This document shows positions 329 through 9,819 of a stretch of 64,000 nucleotides of DNA, piece by piece (the stretch's first letter is position 1; each line of letters opens with the position of its first letter). The notes under the pieces were generated by a model. The model was not told the DNA's origin. It did not search any database and worked only from the letters and a program-made list of their open reading frames with translations. Made by a program: the position numbers and the translations under genes. The stretch is from Obrimoposthia wandeli (lineage: Eukaryota): positions 248,001 to 312,000 of the forward strand of contig CDROCS010001089.1 in the NCBI GenBank assembly GCA_977020255.1, in the 5' to 3' direction.

Positions 329-781
329 ATGAATTGGTTATTTCCCGAAAAAAAACGTCATATAGCTGCTAAGCGCAGTTTAAGTTTAGCACTGCGCACC
401 TTACACCTTATTGGTATTGCTGGGCTCGCAGGGGCTTTTTTGTTTGCCTTACCCGCCAATCAATGGCAAGAGTATCTTTGGTTAACGCTCGCAAGCGGTG
501 GCCTAATGGTAGTAAAAGAAATTTATACTGATGGCATTTGGCTAGTGCAACTCAGGGGCCAAGTGATCCTCGCTAAAATACTCATTTTAGGTTTTGCATG
601 GTTTTACTTGCAAGTATTAGACAGCTGGATTTACCTGCTGTGTATTGTGCTATCAGGTATTATTGCCCATGGGCCGGGTAAGCTTCGATATTATTCTCTG
701 TGGCATCGTAAGGTATACACCGCAGATGTTCGCAAAGGTAAACCTCTAGGAATTGTTAAAAATAGCGGAGAGAGTGAATAA
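329..781 (+). CDS. conserved hypothetical integral membrane protein (about 4 TM segments)
   Basis: 150-aa ATG ORF with alternating hydrophobic segments and His-containing motifs (RTLHLIG, IIAHGPGKLRYYS). Confidence 0.75.
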   Translation: MNWLFPEKKRHIAAKRSLSLALRTLHLIGIAGLAGAFLFALPANQWQEYLWLTLASGGLMVVKEIYTDGIWLVQLRGQVILAKILILGFAWFYLQVLDSWIYLLCIVLSGIIAHGPGKLRYYSLWHRKVYTADVRKGKPLGIVKNSGESE

Positions 782-1169: not shown

Positions 1170-1260
1170 ATGATCTATATCATCTCCTAAATAACTACTA
1201 TCTATCTTTTACGGCTAAGTTGACTTAGATCATATTAAATTTTCAAACCTACTTTACTAT
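1170..1260 (+). promoter_or_regulatory. tandem FNR/DNR-type boxes plus -10 element (class II anaerobic promoter)
   Basis: ATGAT-CTAT-ATCAT (1170-1183) and TTGAC-TTAG-ATCAT (1220-1233) each match 8/10 of TTGAT-N4-ATCAA. TACTAT at 1255-1260 places the proximal box near -41.5. Confidence 0.75.
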
Positions 1261-1313
1261 TGCCAAACGTATTTAATGTGCGTCAATGAATTTAGTTGGA
1301 TTGAGGATATACC

Positions 1314-1628
1314 ATGCACGCTTTTTTGAAACGTTACTTATTACTGGCCATGTTCATCACCGCTCTGCCAATCGCTGCATTAGCTCAAGGTGAAAATAAA
1401 CATAGCATGACTGTTGTGACGACGGGTGTTATTAAAAGTGTCTTGACTGAGAGCAAACAACTAAAAATACAGCATCAAATGATCCCCGAATGGAACATGA
1501 AAGCCATGCAAATGAAATTTAACCTAGCCCCTACGCTTAAAATTGAAAGCTTTAAACAAGGGCAAACTATCAAATTTCGTATGCAGCATAAGAATATGAT
1601 GAAATTTACTGTACTGGAAATTCTGTAG
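1314..1628 (+). CDS. CusF-like periplasmic Cu(I)-binding protein
   Basis: Signal peptide (IAALA-QG). HQMIPEWNMKAMQMKF aligns with the CusF metal site H-x7-W/M-x2-M-x-M. GQTIKF at the C-terminus. RBS GAGG. Confidence 0.8.
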   Translation: MHAFLKRYLLLAMFITALPIAALAQGENKHSMTVVTTGVIKSVLTESKQLKIQHQMIPEWNMKAMQMKFNLAPTLKIESFKQGQTIKFRMQHKNMMKFTVLEIL

Positions 1629-1704
1629 TTAGATATTTTTGTTAACTGTGCATAAACAATAGCCGAACTTATCAATTTTCGTTTACCAATACCGAGATAA
1701 CCCA

Positions 1705-3921
1705 ATGATTAATCCCTCAATTAGTAACTTTGTAGCACGCTTTAGTGCTTTTACAATTTGCTTAATTTTAGGCTTTATTAATCTAAATGCCCAAGCCATG
1801 GTGCCTGTTTCATCGCTGCAACAGTTAGAAACCGTTCGTATAGCCTTTCCCAGCGCAGATAAAATTAGCGATAAGTACCCGTTAGAAGGTGAGCAAGTCT
1901 TAGTTCGCAAGATATTAGCGGGAGAGGAAATACTAGGCTACGCTTTTAATACCAACGATGTCGTTGATATTCCCGCTTATTCAGGCAAACCGATTAATAC
2001 CTTGATTGCGATGGATACCAAGGGAACGTTAGTCGCTACCCAAGTATTAGAGCATCACGAGCCCATTTTATTGGTTGGCATCCCCGAACATACATTATTT
2101 GACTTTGTTGATAAATACCAAGGCCTAAAAGTAACCGATAGTGTCCGCGTTGGCGCGGCTAATAATAAAGATGTGATCAGCGTTGATGTAATATCAGGTG
2201 CTACTGTCACCGTGATGGTGGTCAATGAGGCAATCATGCGCTCTGCCCGAAAAGTTGCCGGTTTGCTGAATATCGCCGGCCTTTCTGCACAGGCGAAAGT
2301 ACCACCTGCAACCATTAAAACAGATGTGTTTAGCCAAGCTGATTGGCCCAAACTAACAGGTGATGGTTCTATAAGACGCTTATTGCTAGATAAAGAAACC
2401 GTCAACAAAGCTTTTATCGGCACTAAAGCGCACCGCCCTAGCGGTTCAGGGAAAAAACGCAAACAAAAGCAAACTTTTATCGAGTTATTCTATGCGCCAA
2501 TAAGTATCCCTACCATCGGTCGCAATTTACTGGGAGAACAACAGTATAAATGGCTGCTGAGCGAGTTAAACCCAGGAGACACCGCCATTGGCGTATTTGG
2601 CAAAGGCGAATATTCTTTTAAAGGTAACGGCTACGTGCGGGGCGGCATTTTCGATCGCACTCAGTTACAACAAGATGGTAAAGCAATCAGTTTTCACGAT
2701 AGCGATTACTATCGCTTAGATGATGTTTACATTGAAGGTTTCCCAGGCTTCCCAGAAATGGCCATTTTCATCGTCAGGGAACAGTACGATTTTGACTTGG
2801 GCTCTCCTTGGCAATTAGAGTTACTGGTGCGCCGCCAAATAGGCGCTTTAGATAGTATTTTCACTAGCTTCTACGGTGATTACTTAACACCGGAACAGTA
2901 CATCGATAGACCTGAACCAATAATAGAACCTGAGCCAACGCCTTTGTGGGTAACTGTTTGGGAGCAAAAGAGTTTTCAAATTGCGGTGCTTAGCGTAGCC
3001 CTTGGTTTTTTATTCATCATTATTTTTATTCAAGACGTGTTAGTGCGCTATCCTAAATTGATGCATGGTTTACGCCAAGGCTACCTAGTATTTACCGTGG
3101 TTTTTATTGGTTGGTATTGTCTAGGGCAGCTATCAGTGGTCAATGTCTTTACCTTTGTGCACGCTTTCCAAGGTAACTTTCAGTGGGATTTATTTTTACT
3201 TGATCCAGTGTTGTTTATCCTTTGGGGCTTTGTTGCGATGACAATGCTGCTTTGGGGAAGAGGTATTTTCTGTGGCTGGTTATGTCCTTTTGGTGCGCTA
3301 CAAGAACTAATCAATGAACTGGCGCGACGTCTTAAAATTAAGCAGTATGAAATTCCTTTCGCTGTTCACGAACGCCTTTGGGCGATCAAATATGTGGTTT
3401 TATTAGCATTATTTGCGATCTCTTTAGAGTCACTTTCAGAAGCGGAACGCTATTCAGAAATAGAGCCTTTTAAAACCACTTTTCTTTTAAAGTTTCAGCG
3501 TGAATGGGGCTATGTGTTCTACGCGGCAATACTACTTGTGATCAACATTTTCACGCGCAAAGTGTACTGCCGTTATATTTGCCCACTTGGCGCGGCACTG
3601 GCAATTCCTGCTCGTTTACGTTTGTTTGATTGGCTCAAGCGTCGTAAAGAGTGCGGACAACCATGCAAAGTTTGTGCGAACGAATGTGAAATTCAAGCGA
3701 TTCATCCTGACGGCACTATCAATGCGAACGAGTGCCATCAGTGCCTTGATTGCCAAGTTACCTATTATCGACAAGACAAATGCCCACCTTTAGTGGTGGC
3801 AAAACGTAAACGAGATAAACAAGCGACTGCTTTAAAAAACAAAGCAGAAATAGACATTCTAGATGTCACTAATGAGGCACCAAAAAGCGTTGCCACAATG
3901 CAAATTGGAGAACCAAGATGA
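1705..3921 (+). CDS. nosR: NosR membrane flavoprotein/Fe-S regulator and electron donor
   Basis: FMN-binding motif [15 protein letters not shown] and CRYICPLG motifs, two C-terminal ferredoxin-type Cys clusters. Overlaps the nosZ start. Confidence 0.97.
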
Positions 3922-5825
3922 TTGACCCTAATGATAAAGATTTACCAAAAATTGATACTGAAGATCAACATGCAAGTGAGCATGTTAAAGTAAGCCGCCG
4001 CTTATTCTTAGGGGGATCAGCAGCTTTAGTCGGCGCTGCAACCACTATGGGAGCAACTTTAGGTGGAGCGTTAACACCCAGTGTCGCTCAGGCTTCAAGC
4101 TCTGCAGCTTCAGTAGGCCCTGGCGAGCTAGATGAGTACTATGGTTTTTGGAGTGGCGGCCACTCTGGTGAAGTACGTATTCTTGGTTTGCCTTCAATGC
4201 GCGAACTTTCGCGGATACCAGTATTCAATGTCGACAGTGCAACAGGCTGGGGCATTACTAATGAAAGTAAAGCGATACTGGGCGAAAATGCCTACTTAAA
4301 TGGCGATTGTCACCATCCCCACATGTCGATGAAAGACGGTCATTACGATGGAAAGTATGTTTTTATCAATGATAAAGCCAATTCGCGTGTTGCGCGTATT
4401 CGTTGCGATATCATGAAAACCGATAAAATCACCACCATTCCAAATTGCCAAGCTATTCACGGTTTAAGAGTACAAAAAGTGCCTTACACTAAGTATGTCT
4501 TTGCTAACGCAGAATTTCGTATCCCCCATCCAAATAATGGTTTAAATATGGATGATATCGCGGGCTACTACACTCTTTTTAATGCCATTGACGCTGAATC
4601 CATGGATGTTTCGTGGCAGGTAATTGTCGATGGTAACTTAGATAACACTGATGCTGATTATACAGGTAAGTACGCATTCTCTACTGCCTATAACTCAGAA
4701 GGTGCGGTTGATCTTGCCGGTACTATGCGCGCAGAACGTGATCACTTAGTGGTGTTTAATATTGCTTTAATAGAAGCTGCAGTTAAAGCGGGTGACTTCA
4801 TTAAATTGCCAGGTTCTGATGTGCCAGTGCTTAATGGTCGTAAAGGCTCTAAGTTAACGCGCTATATCCCAGTACCTAAAAACCCGCATGGGATCAATAC
4901 TGCGCCAGGTGGTAAATATGCAGTCGCTAATGGTAAGTTATCGCCAACGGTTACCGTATTTGAACTTGCCAAATTTGACGACTTATTTGCCGATAAGATC
5001 AAGCCTAGAGATACTGTAGTAGCTGAAGTTGAGCTAGGATTAGGTCCATTGCACACCGCCTTTGACGGCAAGGGTAATGCCTTTACAACGCTGTTTATCG
5101 ATAGCCAAGTATGTAAGTGGAATATCGAAAAAGCCATTCAAGCTTATCAAGGTAAGGAAGTGGATTACATCTTGCAAAAATTGGATGTTCACTACCAGCC
5201 AGGTCACAACCATACAACTATGGGCGAGACTCGTGATGCAGACGGTAAATACTTAGTCTCTTTGCAGAAATTCTCTAAAGATAGATTCTTACAGTGTGGT
5301 CCATTACACCCAGAAAACGATCAGTTAATTGACATTTCAGGTGATCAAATGAAGCTGATCCACGATGGCCCAGCTTACGCCGAACCCCATGACTGTATGA
5401 TGGTGCATCGCTCCATGGTGAAAACACGCAAAATATACGATCGTAAAGATCCGACCTTTGCTGCCACTATTGCGATGGCAAAAGCGGATGGTGTTACCGT
5501 GCACACTGATAACAAAGTAATCCGTGACGGCAATAAAGTACGTGTTTATATGACGTCTATTGCGCCTGTTTATGGTATTACTGAGTTCAATGTTAAATTA
5601 GGTGATGAGGTTACAGTTGTCGTTACTAACTTAGATCAAATTGAAGATGTAACACACGGTTTCTGTATGGTTAACCATGGTGTACAAATGGAAATCAGCC
5701 CACAACAAACCGCTTCTGTTACTTTCAAAGCCGATAAGTTAGGCGTGCAATGGTATTACTGCAACTGGTTCTGTCATGCATTACATATGGAAATGCGTGG
5801 CCGTATGTTGGTTGAGCCCGCTTAA
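3918..5825 (+). CDS. nosZ: nitrous oxide reductase, clade I (Tat-exported)
   Basis: Twin-arginine SRRLFL signal, DCHHPH and DVHYQPGH CuZ motifs, CuA motif [15 protein letters not shown]. Confidence 0.99.
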
Positions 5826-5911: not shown

Positions 5912-7282
5912 ATGAAGACTTTTCATCTTTACGGCAATGTCTTTACACGCTTATTGCGCTCGCCTATCCATTTTTTTGCAATACTACTGTTCAGTGCATT
6001 TACCCAGGCAGCAAGTATTCAAGTTTCACCCGCTGACAACCTACAAGCAATATTAGACGCTAGCAAAGCAGGTGATGAGATCATTTTGCAAAAAGGCCTT
6101 TATCAAGGCAATTTTAGCTTGGCAAAAAGCTTGCACTTACGTTCCGAAAAAAATGCCCAAAATGAGATAGTAATCGATGCACAAGGCTCTGGTCACGCTC
6201 TACAAATACTCGCTGAGAACACAATAGTAGAAAATTTGCGCATTATTAACTGGGGGGATGATTTAACCGATCAAGATGCCGGAATTTACATTGCCAAAAA
6301 AGCCACTGGCGCTGTCGTACAAAACAACAGCTTGCAAGGCGGTGGGTTTGGTATCTGGGTTGATGCAACTAAAGATGTACGAATATCAAACAACAAAGTA
6401 CAAGGTGATACTGCAATACGCTCCACCGATAGAGGCAACGGCATCCACTTATTTAATGTCACTGGCGCCAAAGTACAAGGCAATGAAATTTGGCACACCC
6501 GAGATGGTATTTATATAGATACAAGTAACAATAATTCCCTTTTAGATAATAGAATTCACGATCTGCGCTACGGCATCCATTACATGTACTCGTACAATAA
6601 TTTGTTACAAGGCAATCACACTGAAAATACCCGTACTGGCTATGCACTCATGCAATCTAAGTTTCTTACGGTGCTTGACAACCATTCAAAAAACGATGCT
6701 AACTATGGCATTTTGATGAATTACATCACTAACTCTAAATTGCGTAATAATCACATTAGCGGCATTCAAAATAAACGTAATCCTCATATGCAAAAACTAA
6801 GCAACACCATGAGCCGCCGCAAAGGGCTGGAAGGCAAGGCGCTGTTCATCTACAACTCGCTATTTAATGAATTCATTGATAACAATTTCCAAAGTAGCGA
6901 CATTGGCATTCATTTAACAGCGGGATCTGAAAACAATCAGCTTAGTGGCAATAATTTTATCAATAACAAAACCCAAGTTAAATACGTGTCTACCAGAGCG
7001 CAAGATTGGTCGGGTAATTATTGGAGTGACTATTTAGGCTGGGACATGAATGCAGATGGCATCGGCGACATCAAATACGAACCTAACGATAGTGTCGATC
7101 GCTTACTTTGGAAATTCCCAAGTGCAAAATTATTACTTAATAGCCCCGCAATAGAAACGCTGCGCTGGGTACAACGTCAGTTTCCGGTATTGAAAGGCTC
7201 GGGCGTTATCGATAGCCAACCTTTGATCAAGCCACGAACAAACTTGAGTGCAGCGCAAAAAATAGCCCTGAGTAATCCTTAG
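5912..7282 (+). CDS. nosD: NosD periplasmic maturation protein (beta-helix)
   Basis: RGNGIHLFN, HDLRYGIHYMYS and GNYWSDYLGWD motifs; position after nosZ. Confidence 0.97.
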   Translation: MKTFHLYGNVFTRLLRSPIHFFAILLFSAFTQAASIQVSPADNLQAILDASKAGDEIILQKGLYQGNFSLAKSLHLRSEKNAQNEIVIDAQGSGHALQILAENTIVENLRIINWGDDLTDQDAGIYIAKKATGAVVQNNSLQGGGFGIWVDATKDVRISNNKVQGDTAIRSTDRGNGIHLFNVTGAKVQGNEIWHTRDGIYIDTSNNNSLLDNRIHDLRYGIHYMYSYNNLLQGNHTENTRTGYALMQSKFLTVLDNHSKNDANYGILMNYITNSKLRNNHISGIQNKRNPHMQKLSNTMSRRKGLEGKALFIYNSLFNEFIDNNFQSSDIGIHLTAGSENNQLSGNNFINNKTQVKYVSTRAQDWSGNYWSDYLGWDMNADGIGDIKYEPNDSVDRLLWKFPSAKLLLNSPAIETLRWVQRQFPVLKGSGVIDSQPLIKPRTNLSAAQKIALSNP

Positions 7283-7497: not shown

Positions 7498-8457
7498 ATG
7501 AGTATTGTTGAATTAAAGCAAGTTGAAAAAAAATATCAGAATGTACATGCCCTGCAAGCGTTAGACTTGAGCTTGCAACCTGGCCAAGTGTTTGGTTTGT
7601 TTGGCCACAATGGTGCCGGTAAAACCACCGTTATCAAGCTTATACTTGGCTTAATCGAAGCTAGCAGTGGTCAAGTGTCTGTATTTGGTGAAAACCCTAC
7701 CCAAGCTAAAGCACAACACATCCGAGAAAAATTAGGCTTTTTACAAGAAAATGTCAGCTTTTATGACCAGCTAAGTGGCTTAGAAGTATTAGAATATTTC
7801 GCACAATTAAAAGGTATTCCCAAAAAGCAATGTACGGCGCTGCTTGAGCAAGTGGGTTTAATCCATGTCTGTAAACGCCGAGTACACACTTACTCAAAAG
7901 GTATGCGCCAGCGCTTAGGCCTTGCACAAGCATTATTAGGCAAACCAAAATTACTCTTGTTAGATGAGCCAACCGTGGGTTTAGATCCTATTGCCACCCG
8001 CGAGTTTTACCAATCTATTGACCAGCTTAAAAAAGATGGCTGTAGTATTGTACTGTGCTCTCACGTATTACCAGGCGTTGAAAGATACATTGATCGTGCG
8101 CTTATTTTAGGCAAAGGTAAACAATTAGCCACTGGCAGTATTAAAGAACTGAGAGAGCAAGCGCATTTACCTGCAACGATGCAACTGCACGGCATTGATG
8201 AACAAAGCTTACGCGCACAGTTACAGCTAACTATGCCTCAATTATCAGCGCAGCTGGAACAAAATTTGCTTCAACACAGTGATGGTAGCTTGAGTTTACA
8301 AGTGCCCATGAGTGATAGAATGGAAGCGATTCGCCAGCTCTCACAAATAGCAGATTTACAGAATCTAGATATCCACCTACCTTCATTAGAAGACTTATAC
8401 GGTCACTTTATTTCAACGCATCTTTCACACATTGGTAAACCTGAGGTAGCACTATGA
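7498..8457 (+). CDS. nosF: NosF ABC transporter ATPase
   Basis: Walker A GHNGAGKT, signature YSKGMRQR, Walker B LLLLDEP; nos context. Confidence 0.96.
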   Translation: MSIVELKQVEKKYQNVHALQALDLSLQPGQVFGLFGHNGAGKTTVIKLILGLIEASSGQVSVFGENPTQAKAQHIREKLGFLQENVSFYDQLSGLEVLEYFAQLKGIPKKQCTALLEQVGLIHVCKRRVHTYSKGMRQRLGLAQALLGKPKLLLLDEPTVGLDPIATREFYQSIDQLKKDGCSIVLCSHVLPGVERYIDRALILGKGKQLATGSIKELREQAHLPATMQLHGIDEQSLRAQLQLTMPQLSAQLEQNLLQHSDGSLSLQVPMSDRMEAIRQLSQIADLQNLDIHLPSLEDLYGHFISTHLSHIGKPEVAL

Positions 8458-9281
8458 AAGCGATTATAACGGTTGCCAAAAAAGAGTTTCGCGATGGTTT
8501 ACGCAACCGTTGGGTTCTCTCTATTTGTATCATCTTTGCCGTGCTGGCAATGGGCATCGCATACTTTGGCGCAGCGGCGGCAGGCAAAGTAGGTTTTACT
8601 TCTCTATCGACAACTATTGTCAGCTTAGCTAGTTTAGCGGTGTTCATCATCCCTTTAATTGCGCTGATGCTAGCGTATGACGGTATTGTTGGCGAAGATG
8701 AGAGCGGCACGTTGCTATTGTTGATGACTTACCCGTTAACTCGTTGGCAGCTTTTATTAGGCAAAATGTTAGGCCAAGGCGCGGTGATGGCGTTTTCTAC
8801 CACAATAGGTTTTGGCTCCTCTGCCATCATGATTGGCTTCTTTTCAGCGGATATCAGCTGGCAAGATTTATTGGCACCCTACGCTATTTTTATTCTCTCA
8901 TCGGTTTTATTAGGTTGGGTTTTCATCGCGATAGCTTACGTTATTAGCGCCAGTGTTAATGAAAAATCCAAAGCGGCAGGGATCGCTTTAATAGTATGGT
9001 TCATTTTTGTATTAGTTTTTGATTTAGGGCTATTGGCTGTACTCGTGACCACGCAAGGGGATGTTAATGCCACTTTGTTTCCGTATTTGTTGCTCCTAAA
9101 CCCCACTGATATTTTTCGCTTAGTCAATATTAGCTACTTTGCTGAGCAAAACCTAAGTGGTTTGATGGCGATTGCCCAACAAACACAATTTAACCTATAC
9201 AGCTTAATGTTAGGGCTAGTTGTTTGGCTATTGGTGCCAATGGGACTGGCAATGCACATTTTTAATCGCAGAGGGCTTTAA
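8454..9281 (+). CDS. nosY: NosY ABC transporter permease
   Basis: AKKEFRDGLRNRW start, GEDESGTLLLLMTYP and LLNPTDIFRL motifs; overlaps the nosF stop. Confidence 0.96.
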   Translation: MKAIITVAKKEFRDGLRNRWVLSICIIFAVLAMGIAYFGAAAAGKVGFTSLSTTIVSLASLAVFIIPLIALMLAYDGIVGEDESGTLLLLMTYPLTRWQLLLGKMLGQGAVMAFSTTIGFGSSAIMIGFFSADISWQDLLAPYAIFILSSVLLGWVFIAIAYVISASVNEKSKAAGIALIVWFIFVLVFDLGLLAVLVTTQGDVNATLFPYLLLLNPTDIFRLVNISYFAEQNLSGLMAIAQQTQFNLYSLMLGLVVWLLVPMGLAMHIFNRRGL

Positions 9282-9282
9282 G

Positions 9283-9819
9283 ATGATTATTAAAATCAGT
9301 ATGCAGTTTAAATTATATTTTGCTTTAGCACTGCTACCTCTGCTGATGGCTTGTAATGACAACGAGCAAACTGCAATGGTGCAGCGTGCAGTGGCGATTG
9401 AAAGTAGTGATGAGTGCCATTTATGTGGCATGATAATCACCAATTTCCCCGGCCCTAAAGGCCAGCTATATACAAAAGGCATTGAGGGGAATCTCAAATT
9501 TTGTTCAACCCGCGATATGTTCGCTTTTATTGTCGACCCTGAAAACCAGCACAACATCCAACAAGTGTTTGTGCACGATATGGCAATCACGCCGTGGGAT
9601 CACCCTGATAACGAAACTTATGTTGACGCTAAAGAAGCTTTCTATGTCATCGGGCATAATAAGCAAGGTGCGATGGGCCCCACTTTAGCCAGTTTTGCCA
9701 AACGCTCAGATGCAGAGGCTTTTACAGCATTAGAAGGCGGCAAAGTATTCACTTTTGCCGAGATTGATTTAGCGACCTTAGTCGATATGACAGCACCCTC
9801 TCTTCATAAGAAAGGGTGA
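9283..9819 (+). CDS. nosL: NosL copper chaperone lipoprotein
   Basis: Lipobox LLMAC, CHLCGM motif, GAMGP motif. The ATG at 9283 just after the nosY stop is preferred to the track start at 9220. Confidence 0.95.
   Translation: MIIKISMQFKLYFALALLPLLMACNDNEQTAMVQRAVAIESSDECHLCGMIITNFPGPKGQLYTKGIEGNLKFCSTRDMFAFIVDPENQHNIQQVFVHDMAITPWDHPDNETYVDAKEAFYVIGHNKQGAMGPTLASFAKRSDAEAFTALEGGKVFTFAEIDLATLVDMTAPSLHKKG

Follow-up and report, generated by a model that had tools for sequence, protein, structure and literature searches.

A CusF-like gene at the head of a nos operon probably encodes an undescribed copper helper for nitrous oxide reductase

To our knowledge, NosZ is the only known biological sink for nitrous oxide (N2O). 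Each NosZ monomer takes up six copper atoms, and the enzyme does not work when the metal is in short supply; NosL is the established Cu(I) chaperone of its maturation; how copper reaches NosL in the periplasm is, as far as we know, still open in the field. Here we describe a small CusF-like gene that stands directly ahead of a nosRZDFYL cluster in a stretch of 64,000 nucleotides (nt), hereafter the window, which covers positions 248,001 to 312,000 of the forward strand of contig CDROCS010001089.1 in an assembly filed under Obrimoposthia wandeli (GCA_977020255.1). Genes were assigned with Pfam and NCBIfam profiles, and FNR/DNR-type boxes were scored against TTGAT-N4-ATCAA, in which 10 bases are specified. 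The locus reads as follows (aa, amino acids).

1170-1183, + strand: distal FNR/DNR-type box, 8 of 10 bases, centred 137 nt before the ATG of the CusF-like gene.
1220-1233, + strand: proximal FNR/DNR-type box, TTGAC-N4-ATCAT, 8 of 10 bases, centred 87 nt before the same ATG.
1255-1260, + strand: candidate -10 hexamer TACTAT, proposed from the sequence and not listed by the sigma-70 scan.
1303-1307, + strand: Shine-Dalgarno sequence GAGGA, 6 nt before the ATG of the CusF-like gene.
1314-1628, + strand: nos-linked CusF-like gene, 104 aa, ATG start, assigned by Pfam, alignment and an AlphaFold2 model; predicted signal peptide at about residues 1-24, OB-fold domain at residues 31-104, metal site H54, W60, M62, M65 and M67.
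1629-1704, + strand: spacer of 76 nt between the CusF-like gene and nosR, with no terminator, stable hairpin or FNR-type box.
1705-3921, + strand: nosR (NCBIfam TransRegNosR, 1137 bits against a cut-off of 1000).
3918-5825, + strand: nosZ, TAT-dependent clade I, 1040 bits; its start overlaps the nosR stop (ATGA).
5912-7282, + strand: nosD, from the Pfam/NCBIfam-type profile scan of the window.
7498-8457, + strand: nosF, from the profile scan of the window.
8454-9281, + strand: nosY, from the profile scan of the window.
9220-9819, + strand: nosL, 199 aa from a listed TTG start that overlaps nosY by 62 nt (9220-9281); NosL of relatives has 167-187 aa, and translation probably begins further into the frame.

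The product of the CusF-like gene matches CusF_Ec (Pfam PF11604) at 59.1 bits, against a gathering cut-off of 27, over profile positions 3-70 of 72. A preliminary description had placed a CusF-type gene at these coordinates, on the same strand as nosR and 76 bp ahead of its start, and this is borne out. The NCBIfam CusF subfamily model PRK09838 is not reached (42.4 bits against a cut-off of 143). Inspection of the N-terminus shows an n-region of basic character, then a hydrophobic core and an A-L-A cleavage motif directly ahead of Q25; this region, which is of low confidence in the AlphaFold2 model, reads as a Sec signal peptide with predicted export to the periplasm. The protein contains no Cys, so that its N-terminus has no lipobox, and its C-terminus is not proline-rich. 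The AlphaFold2 model (built on 23 sequences) has five strands in an OB-type barrel, with predicted local distance difference test scores (pLDDT) above 90 over residues 31-104, and its best match in the PDB, found with Foldseek, is Cu(I)-CusF (2vb2; TM-score 0.83, root-mean-square deviation 2.2 Å over 73 columns), followed by SilF and then by the SilB C-terminal domain. The predicted fold is that of the five-stranded CusF OB-barrel.

By phmmer alignment to the Escherichia coli CusF structures, H54 corresponds to H36, M62 to W44, M65 to M47 and M67 to M49. The site H-x7-M-x2-M-x-M with Met at the E. coli Trp44 position, as read earlier, is therefore exactly borne out: Met62 takes the place of the Trp44 found in E. 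coli-type CusF, and Trp60 lies two residues before it. H54, W60, M62, M65 and M67 are invariant in all 31 nos-linked sequences compared, which are otherwise 35-85% identical. The preliminary description had also stressed the Trp-to-Met change. The substitution is real, and it does not by itself mark a repurposed protein, since many CusF homologues at large have a Met here (H-L-M-M-M, H-I-M-M-M, H-F-M-M-M and H-Y-M-M-M account for a large share of general matches) and so does at least one cus-linked CusF (L052); the change alone was therefore rejected as a mark of the nos role. What is diagnostic of the nos lineage, as judged from alignments, is the fixed pair Trp60 and Met62; efflux domains of the same order, by contrast, keep the Trp at the Trp44 position. 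Replacing Trp44 with Met is reported to raise the Cu(I) affinity of CusF, and the Trp may shield Cu(I) from oxidation (PMC7558416). A tighter four-ligand site that is made only under anoxia would fit holding and delivering copper better than a rapid hand-off to a pump.

Many relatives also carry His/Met-rich N-terminal extensions, which are typical of Cu(I) capture. A His/Met-rich stretch of 20-45 residues lies between signal peptide and domain in most of them (L040-L042, L030, L035 and others), and the same stretch has only about 8 residues in the protein of the window and its closest kin.

To place the protein among its homologues, we combined several searches. A word-indexed search returned five close homologues at 60-83% identity, which their sources name only 'copper-binding protein' or 'CusF', and the contigs of three of them (P0002, P0003 and P0004) have the same order of a CusF-like gene followed by nosRZDFYL amid three different sets of outside genes. 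We then surveyed the GTDB family to which the closest metagenome-assembled genome (MAG), G001, belongs, in all of its 190 species genomes. The matches in this family were bimodal, with strong matches (E values of 1e-13 to 1e-60) in frames of 105-226 aa and weak matches in frames of 490-760 aa. In tblastn searches with the Nos proteins of the window, all 30 loci of this one family were nos-linked, 24 of them directly upstream of nosR and six directly after nosL. Five more genomes, with six clusters including a two-domain tandem, have by their coordinates a CusF-like gene on the same strand 6-9.5 kb downstream of the nosR start; as this distance is the length of nosRZDFYL, the six clusters were also counted as nos-linked. 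NosR scored above its curated cut-off in 54 genomes of the family, and 35 genomes have a CusF-like gene in the nos cluster (a few of these 35 carriers have nosR only as a fragment or split frame), so that the gene is found in roughly 60% of the family's nos clusters. Across the order, 401 evenly sampled genomes gave no strong match besides G001; as a sample, this is not proof of absence.

An exhaustive HMMER search of 1.84 billion cluster representatives, together with a word-based profile search, was re-scored per domain and gave a clear score gap: 48 domains fell at 83-132 bits and the next domain at 67. The site reads H-W-M-M-M in 47 of the 48 and H-W-N-M-M in the remaining one, the second domain of a tandem protein (P0043). 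By these scores and motifs the CusF-like proteins form a compact, distinct subfamily. The source names of its members are Amphritea, Aliamphritea, Motiliproteus, 'Oceanospirillaceae/Oceanospirillales' MAGs and one Halopseudomonas MAG. Seven more divergent members were looked up, and six of them stand after nosL (P0030, P0034, P0028, P0088, P0077 and the tandem P0043), two of these with a small cytochrome c gene between nosL and the CusF-like gene; the seventh is on a contig of 518 bp with uninformative flanks. Every member with informative flanks thus lies in a nos cluster, 24 directly upstream of nosR and 17 clusters after nosL (about 4 in 10), and none of the members examined stands beside cus genes, while the genes outside the nos cluster vary between metagenomic or isolate members. 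A check proposed earlier was whether homologues would be found only beside cusCBA; the outcome was the opposite, with this subfamily found only in nos clusters.

Several features of individual clusters were recorded along the way. The tandem, two-domain version after nosL (L083 9001-9588, P0043) has Asn at the Trp44 position in its second domain, and one genome with a tandem (G094; G094:C1:3787504-3787950) has a CusF-like gene after nosL in both of its two nos clusters. An apparently damaged nosR accompanies an intact upstream CusF-like gene in two genomes, being split in two frames in G026 (L022, G026:C1) and interrupted by an in-frame TAA in G024 (G024:C2:2138281-2140275). In three after-nosL clusters (L077 1799-2098, L082 1054-1353 and the P0077 contig), a small cytochrome c gene on the opposite strand (PF13442, 96-99 aa) adjoins the CusF-like gene, and one after-nosL cluster with the small cytochrome c gene also has a tatA/E-like gene nearby.

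The position of promoter boxes very probably makes the CusF-like gene the first cistron of an anoxia-induced nos operon. By chance, a random 200-nt window contains a box of at least 8/10 in about 16% of cases and one of at least 9/10 in about 3%. A proximal box of identical sequence and distance is found in G001 (locus L017), the genome of the closest species, and 22 of the 24 upstream-type relatives have a box of 9-10/10 ahead of the CusF-like gene, in which the half-sites are kept and the spacer bases vary. Between the CusF-like gene and nosR, by comparison, none of the 24 upstream-type loci (spacers of 21-220 nt) has a box of 9/10 or better, and the best FNR-type match in the 76-nt spacer of the window is only 6/10. 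In nos clusters of the same family without a CusF-like gene, 17 of 20 have a 9-10/10 box 30-136 nt ahead of nosR. The box that would drive nos thus sits ahead of whichever gene stands first. Since boxes precede the CusF-like gene where it is present (with none in the spacer) and precede nosR where it is missing, the CusF-like gene would be the first cistron. No terminator or attenuator was found in the 76-nt spacer, which folds no better than shuffled sequence (z = +0.76). The suggestion that this gene is probably the first nos cistron is accordingly supported by box placement in 24 clusters with and 20 without the gene and by the terminator-free spacer. The FNR-type promoter of the preliminary description resolves into two boxes that are conserved in relatives and that, at 8/10 each, are weak on their own. 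If TACTAT at 1255-1260 is taken as the -10 element and the proximal box as a class II site, transcription would start near 1268 with the box centred near -41.5. A search of public sequencing runs for this DNA gave two matches from a single study, neither of them an RNA run.

In other loci (L016, L022-L024 and L027) the CusF-like gene is likewise preceded by two FNR/DNR-type boxes with a spacing of 49-50 bp, a pairing that suggests tandem activator sites. Further upstream in the window, an open reading frame of 150 aa at 329-781 (+ strand) has no Pfam or NCBIfam match; the closest MAG has a 150-aa gene without a Pfam match at the equivalent position (L009 9173-9625), just upstream of the CusF-like gene, and more distant relatives do not.

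Efflux-type CusF domains were found in the same genomes as a separate group. The weak matches of the family survey lie in CusB-type adaptors that end in a fused CusF domain, comparable to the SilB C-terminal domain (2l55). These domains share with the nos-linked protein the domain type, the genomes and a Trp equivalent to W60, and differ at the Trp44 position: 38 of the 40 fused domains with an intact His/Met/Met site read H-W-W-M-M, with the equivalent of Trp44 kept, versus H-W-M-M-M in the nos lineage. Both G001 and G002 have such a fused domain, in a frame of 516-531 aa, besides their nos-linked gene. No cus pump genes lie in the 64-kb window, where no open reading frame exceeds 816 aa and all those of at least 400 aa were scanned and are unrelated, as the preliminary description had stated. 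Another contig of the assembly (C2469), however, carries cusC, cusB with a fused CusF domain (513 aa; HlyD_D23 and CusF_Ec) and cusA (1044 aa). This operon is 89-97% identical to that of G001 and has a G+C content of 42.6% versus 40.5% for the window. NosR of the window is 90% identical to NosR of G001, an Oceanospirillaceae-named MAG, and by this resemblance the window contig is that of an Oceanospirillaceae-like bacterium. As the identity of the cus operon to G001 is close to that of NosR and the G+C content is similar, C2469 probably comes from the same bacterium as the window. In its fused CusF domain the critical Trp is retained, and identity of this domain to the nos-linked protein is just 24%.

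The window contig (C1089) sits in an assembly of 1.35 Gb and 6912 contigs with CusF_Ec matches on at least seven contigs, in differing architectures, and the assembly looks like that of a large host or a mixture with several bacteria. Among these matches, three tandem, near-identical, intact CusF domains end one 655-aa frame on another contig (G000:C400:874971-875651; L004-L006). Many CusB-CusF fusions of 589-616 aa (L056, L061, L055, L066, L002/L008, L003 and L073) have a second, degenerate CusF domain that reads R-W-R-A-M/I/V versus H-W-W-M-M and, with its ligands replaced, probably does not bind metal; in L054, L065, L072, L075 and L007 the degenerate domain is the sole CusF domain.

A maximum-likelihood tree of 71 domains, which has few columns and is read only for the number of events, places the nos-linked and efflux-linked domains on opposite sides of one branch (support 87/99). 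The upstream-of-nosR sequences form a clade (99/95) and the after-nosL sequences a grade around that clade. The comparison with efflux-linked CusFs that had been proposed earlier therefore separates the two groups, with the exception of the long-branch sequence L052. Together with the lower scores of the efflux group, the existence of a nos-only subfamily supports the earlier suggestion that a CusF has been repurposed as a nos accessory.

On this basis, we hold it somewhat better than an even chance that the protein is a nos-dedicated periplasmic Cu(I) carrier or buffer, a CusF paralogue made as the first cistron of nosRZDFYL and feeding NosZ metallation. The protein would be exported by Sec and would bind one Cu(I) in a His-Met3 site (H54, M62, M65 and M67) with W60 beside it. 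Transcription would start from an FNR/DNR-type promoter responsive to low oxygen or nitric oxide (NO), and with such a promoter ahead of the nos operon the protein would be made exactly when apo-NosZ is exported. It would then hold periplasmic Cu(I) and pass it to NosL/NosD (the NosL/NosDFY route) or to the CuA site, and would act as a conditional accessory, useful mainly when copper is scarce, and as no core component. The supply role is supported, at the level of sequence comparison, by the strict nos linkage, the promoter placement, the conserved ligands, the His/Met-rich arms and the separate efflux copy; Cu(I) binding, co-transcription, the direction of copper flow and the partner of the protein are what we infer. 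A bolder extension, offered tentatively and with rather less than even confidence, is that the CusF fold works both ways, feeding efflux pumps and also, in the lineage with the tighter His-Met3 site, serving as the missing periplasmic link that collects Cu(I) from an inner-membrane Cu-ATPase or an outer-membrane importer and loads NosL/NosD or CuA.

Several observations weigh against this assignment. About 40% of the nos clusters in the same family are without a CusF-like gene, which makes the gene dispensable for N2O reduction as such, and a search beside 20 of these clusters for a divergent CusF-like gene or another replacement, run with filters off, returned no score that stood out from noise. 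Every cluster seen has NosL, so that no gap in the known pathway demands a CusF-like protein. In the tree, the stand-alone cus-linked CusF L052 (cusR-cusF-cusC) falls among the nos-linked sequences, on a very long and unreliable branch, and, as the upstream-type members are one clade, the many linked loci trace to a small number of events: a single recruitment and a single relocation. The weakest part concerns the boxes of the window itself, which reach just 8/10 and whose reality depends on their conservation in relatives.

The best-surviving of the other explanations, which we nonetheless consider unlikely, is protection. An anoxic Cu(I) buffer would be co-induced with nos since Cu(I) is more toxic without oxygen, and would sequester the metal or hand it to CusCBA encoded elsewhere. 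Efflux is the established role of CusF, and in E. coli the cus system matters most under anaerobic conditions (PMC7558416). The genomes in question also encode cusCBA, and a gene that is dispensable in many nos clusters suits a detoxifier. The pumps, however, have their own fused CusF domain, and the subfamily is never at a cus locus and always with nos, in two positions and with varying outside genes, whereas a general anoxic role would not require travelling with nos. The higher affinity reported for Met in place of Trp44 (PMC7558416) would also favour retention of copper over fast hand-over to a pump.

Help for another denitrification cuproprotein, either NirK or a cupredoxin electron donor, with the tie to nos made by shared regulation only, is improbable. 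G001 does encode a copper nitrite reductase (492 bits), but G002 has the CusF-like gene in the same arrangement with nos and no NirK was found in that possibly incomplete genome; in every case examined the linkage is to nos and never to nirK.

We give slightly less credence still to a cis-acting, Cu-sensing leader cistron in the manner of CutF, which, through its own translation or export, would adjust nosR translation to the copper level of the periplasm. The strongest point against it is the 17 clusters in which the gene follows nosL and has no nos gene downstream. A leader would otherwise be plausible from its place, since CutF-like exported Cu-binding proteins do stand directly before nosZ or nosR, where co-translational copper sensing has been suggested (10.1101/2022.11.11.516240), and the CusF-like gene likewise lies directly before nosR here, with spacers of 21-220 nt. 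The spacer of the window, however, shows no stable fold by which the ribosome site of nosR might be masked, and the protein is predicted to be a complete domain of about 70 residues under strong constraint, with no Cys motif and no proline-rich C-terminus.

Least probable is a passenger, a CusF copy that landed by nos once and was inherited without a role in the cluster: the tree needs just one recruitment and one relocation and about 40% of clusters have lost the gene or never had it, yet the metal ligands are invariant though the protein has diverged to 35% identity, the gene is kept across several genera while outside genes turn over, and the promoter box lies ahead of the gene and not behind it.

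Comparison with known systems sets the supply role we propose in context. E. coli CusF (2vb2, 1zeq; PF11604) and SilF are alike in Pfam family, predicted OB-barrel, predicted periplasmic location, a mature length of about 80 residues and the His and two Met ligands. Unlike them, the nos-linked protein (24-28% identical) has Met for the Trp44 cap and is encoded in nosRZDFYL and not cusCFBA, with FNR/DNR-type boxes instead of the CusRS control of E. coli CusF. NosL shares with the CusF-like protein the cluster, the predicted location in the periplasm and the expected binding of one Cu(I) through Met/His-type ligands, but it has an unrelated fold and is a lipoprotein. As NosL is in all nos clusters seen versus roughly 60% for the CusF-like gene, the latter is an addition and not a replacement. 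CutF of Rhodobacter capsulatus and CutF-like leaders are small, Sec-exported Cu-binding proteins directly upstream of a cuproenzyme gene, a description that the protein of the window would share; the CusF-like protein differs from them in the absence of a Cys-rich motif, a stalling C-terminus and a downstream stem-loop and in its occurrence after nosL.

Two published sets of nos neighbours are closer in genomic setting. The FESNov family NOV5WD8W is a small protein by nosZ with a CusF-like predicted fold, for which copper transfer to NosZ has been proposed (Rodriguez del Rio et al., Nature 2023, PMC10849945). According to its description, it is a sequence orphan from uncultivated taxa and a proposed replacement for NosL, whereas the protein described here belongs to PF11604 and coexists with NosL. 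The small accessory proteins NosP/NosQ are found in some clade I nos clusters (bioRxiv 10.64898/2025.12.16.694761). They differ in lying between nosL and nosR in Beta- and Gammaproteobacteria of acid soils, they form a complex with NosZ that protects maturation at low pH, and the abstract and the account of nos clusters in that preprint do not describe them as CusF-like.

In a review CusF is stated to be 'not involved in cuproprotein biogenesis' (PMC7558416), and we found no published report of a PF11604 gene in a nos cluster, nor any paper on nosZ in Amphritea, in a search that left subscription journals outside, so that an older description is possible. We read the present case as recruitment of a CusF paralogue into the gene cluster that assembles a cuproenzyme; that a protein encoded beside nosZ may have a CusF fold has already been proposed for NOV5WD8W. 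Taken with the comparisons above, the CusF-like subfamily of nos clusters is probably a so far undescribed accessory that provides NosZ with copper or buffers the metal for it.

The lineage is taxonomically narrow, it is dispensable in many relatives, and the idea behind it has one published precedent. Within these limits, a nos-only CusF lineage, probably under the nos promoter and with a variant of the site that is reported to bind Cu(I) more tightly, offers a concrete candidate for the upstream copper-supply step, and one that can be tested, as it occurs in cultured marine bacteria (by their source names Amphritea, Aliamphritea and Motiliproteus). The nos lineage also allows the purpose of the Trp44 cap to be studied in a naturally occurring variant. 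If the bolder extension is true, the CusF-like protein would be an unnamed nos maturation factor that sets the performance of marine N2O reducers at nanomolar copper.

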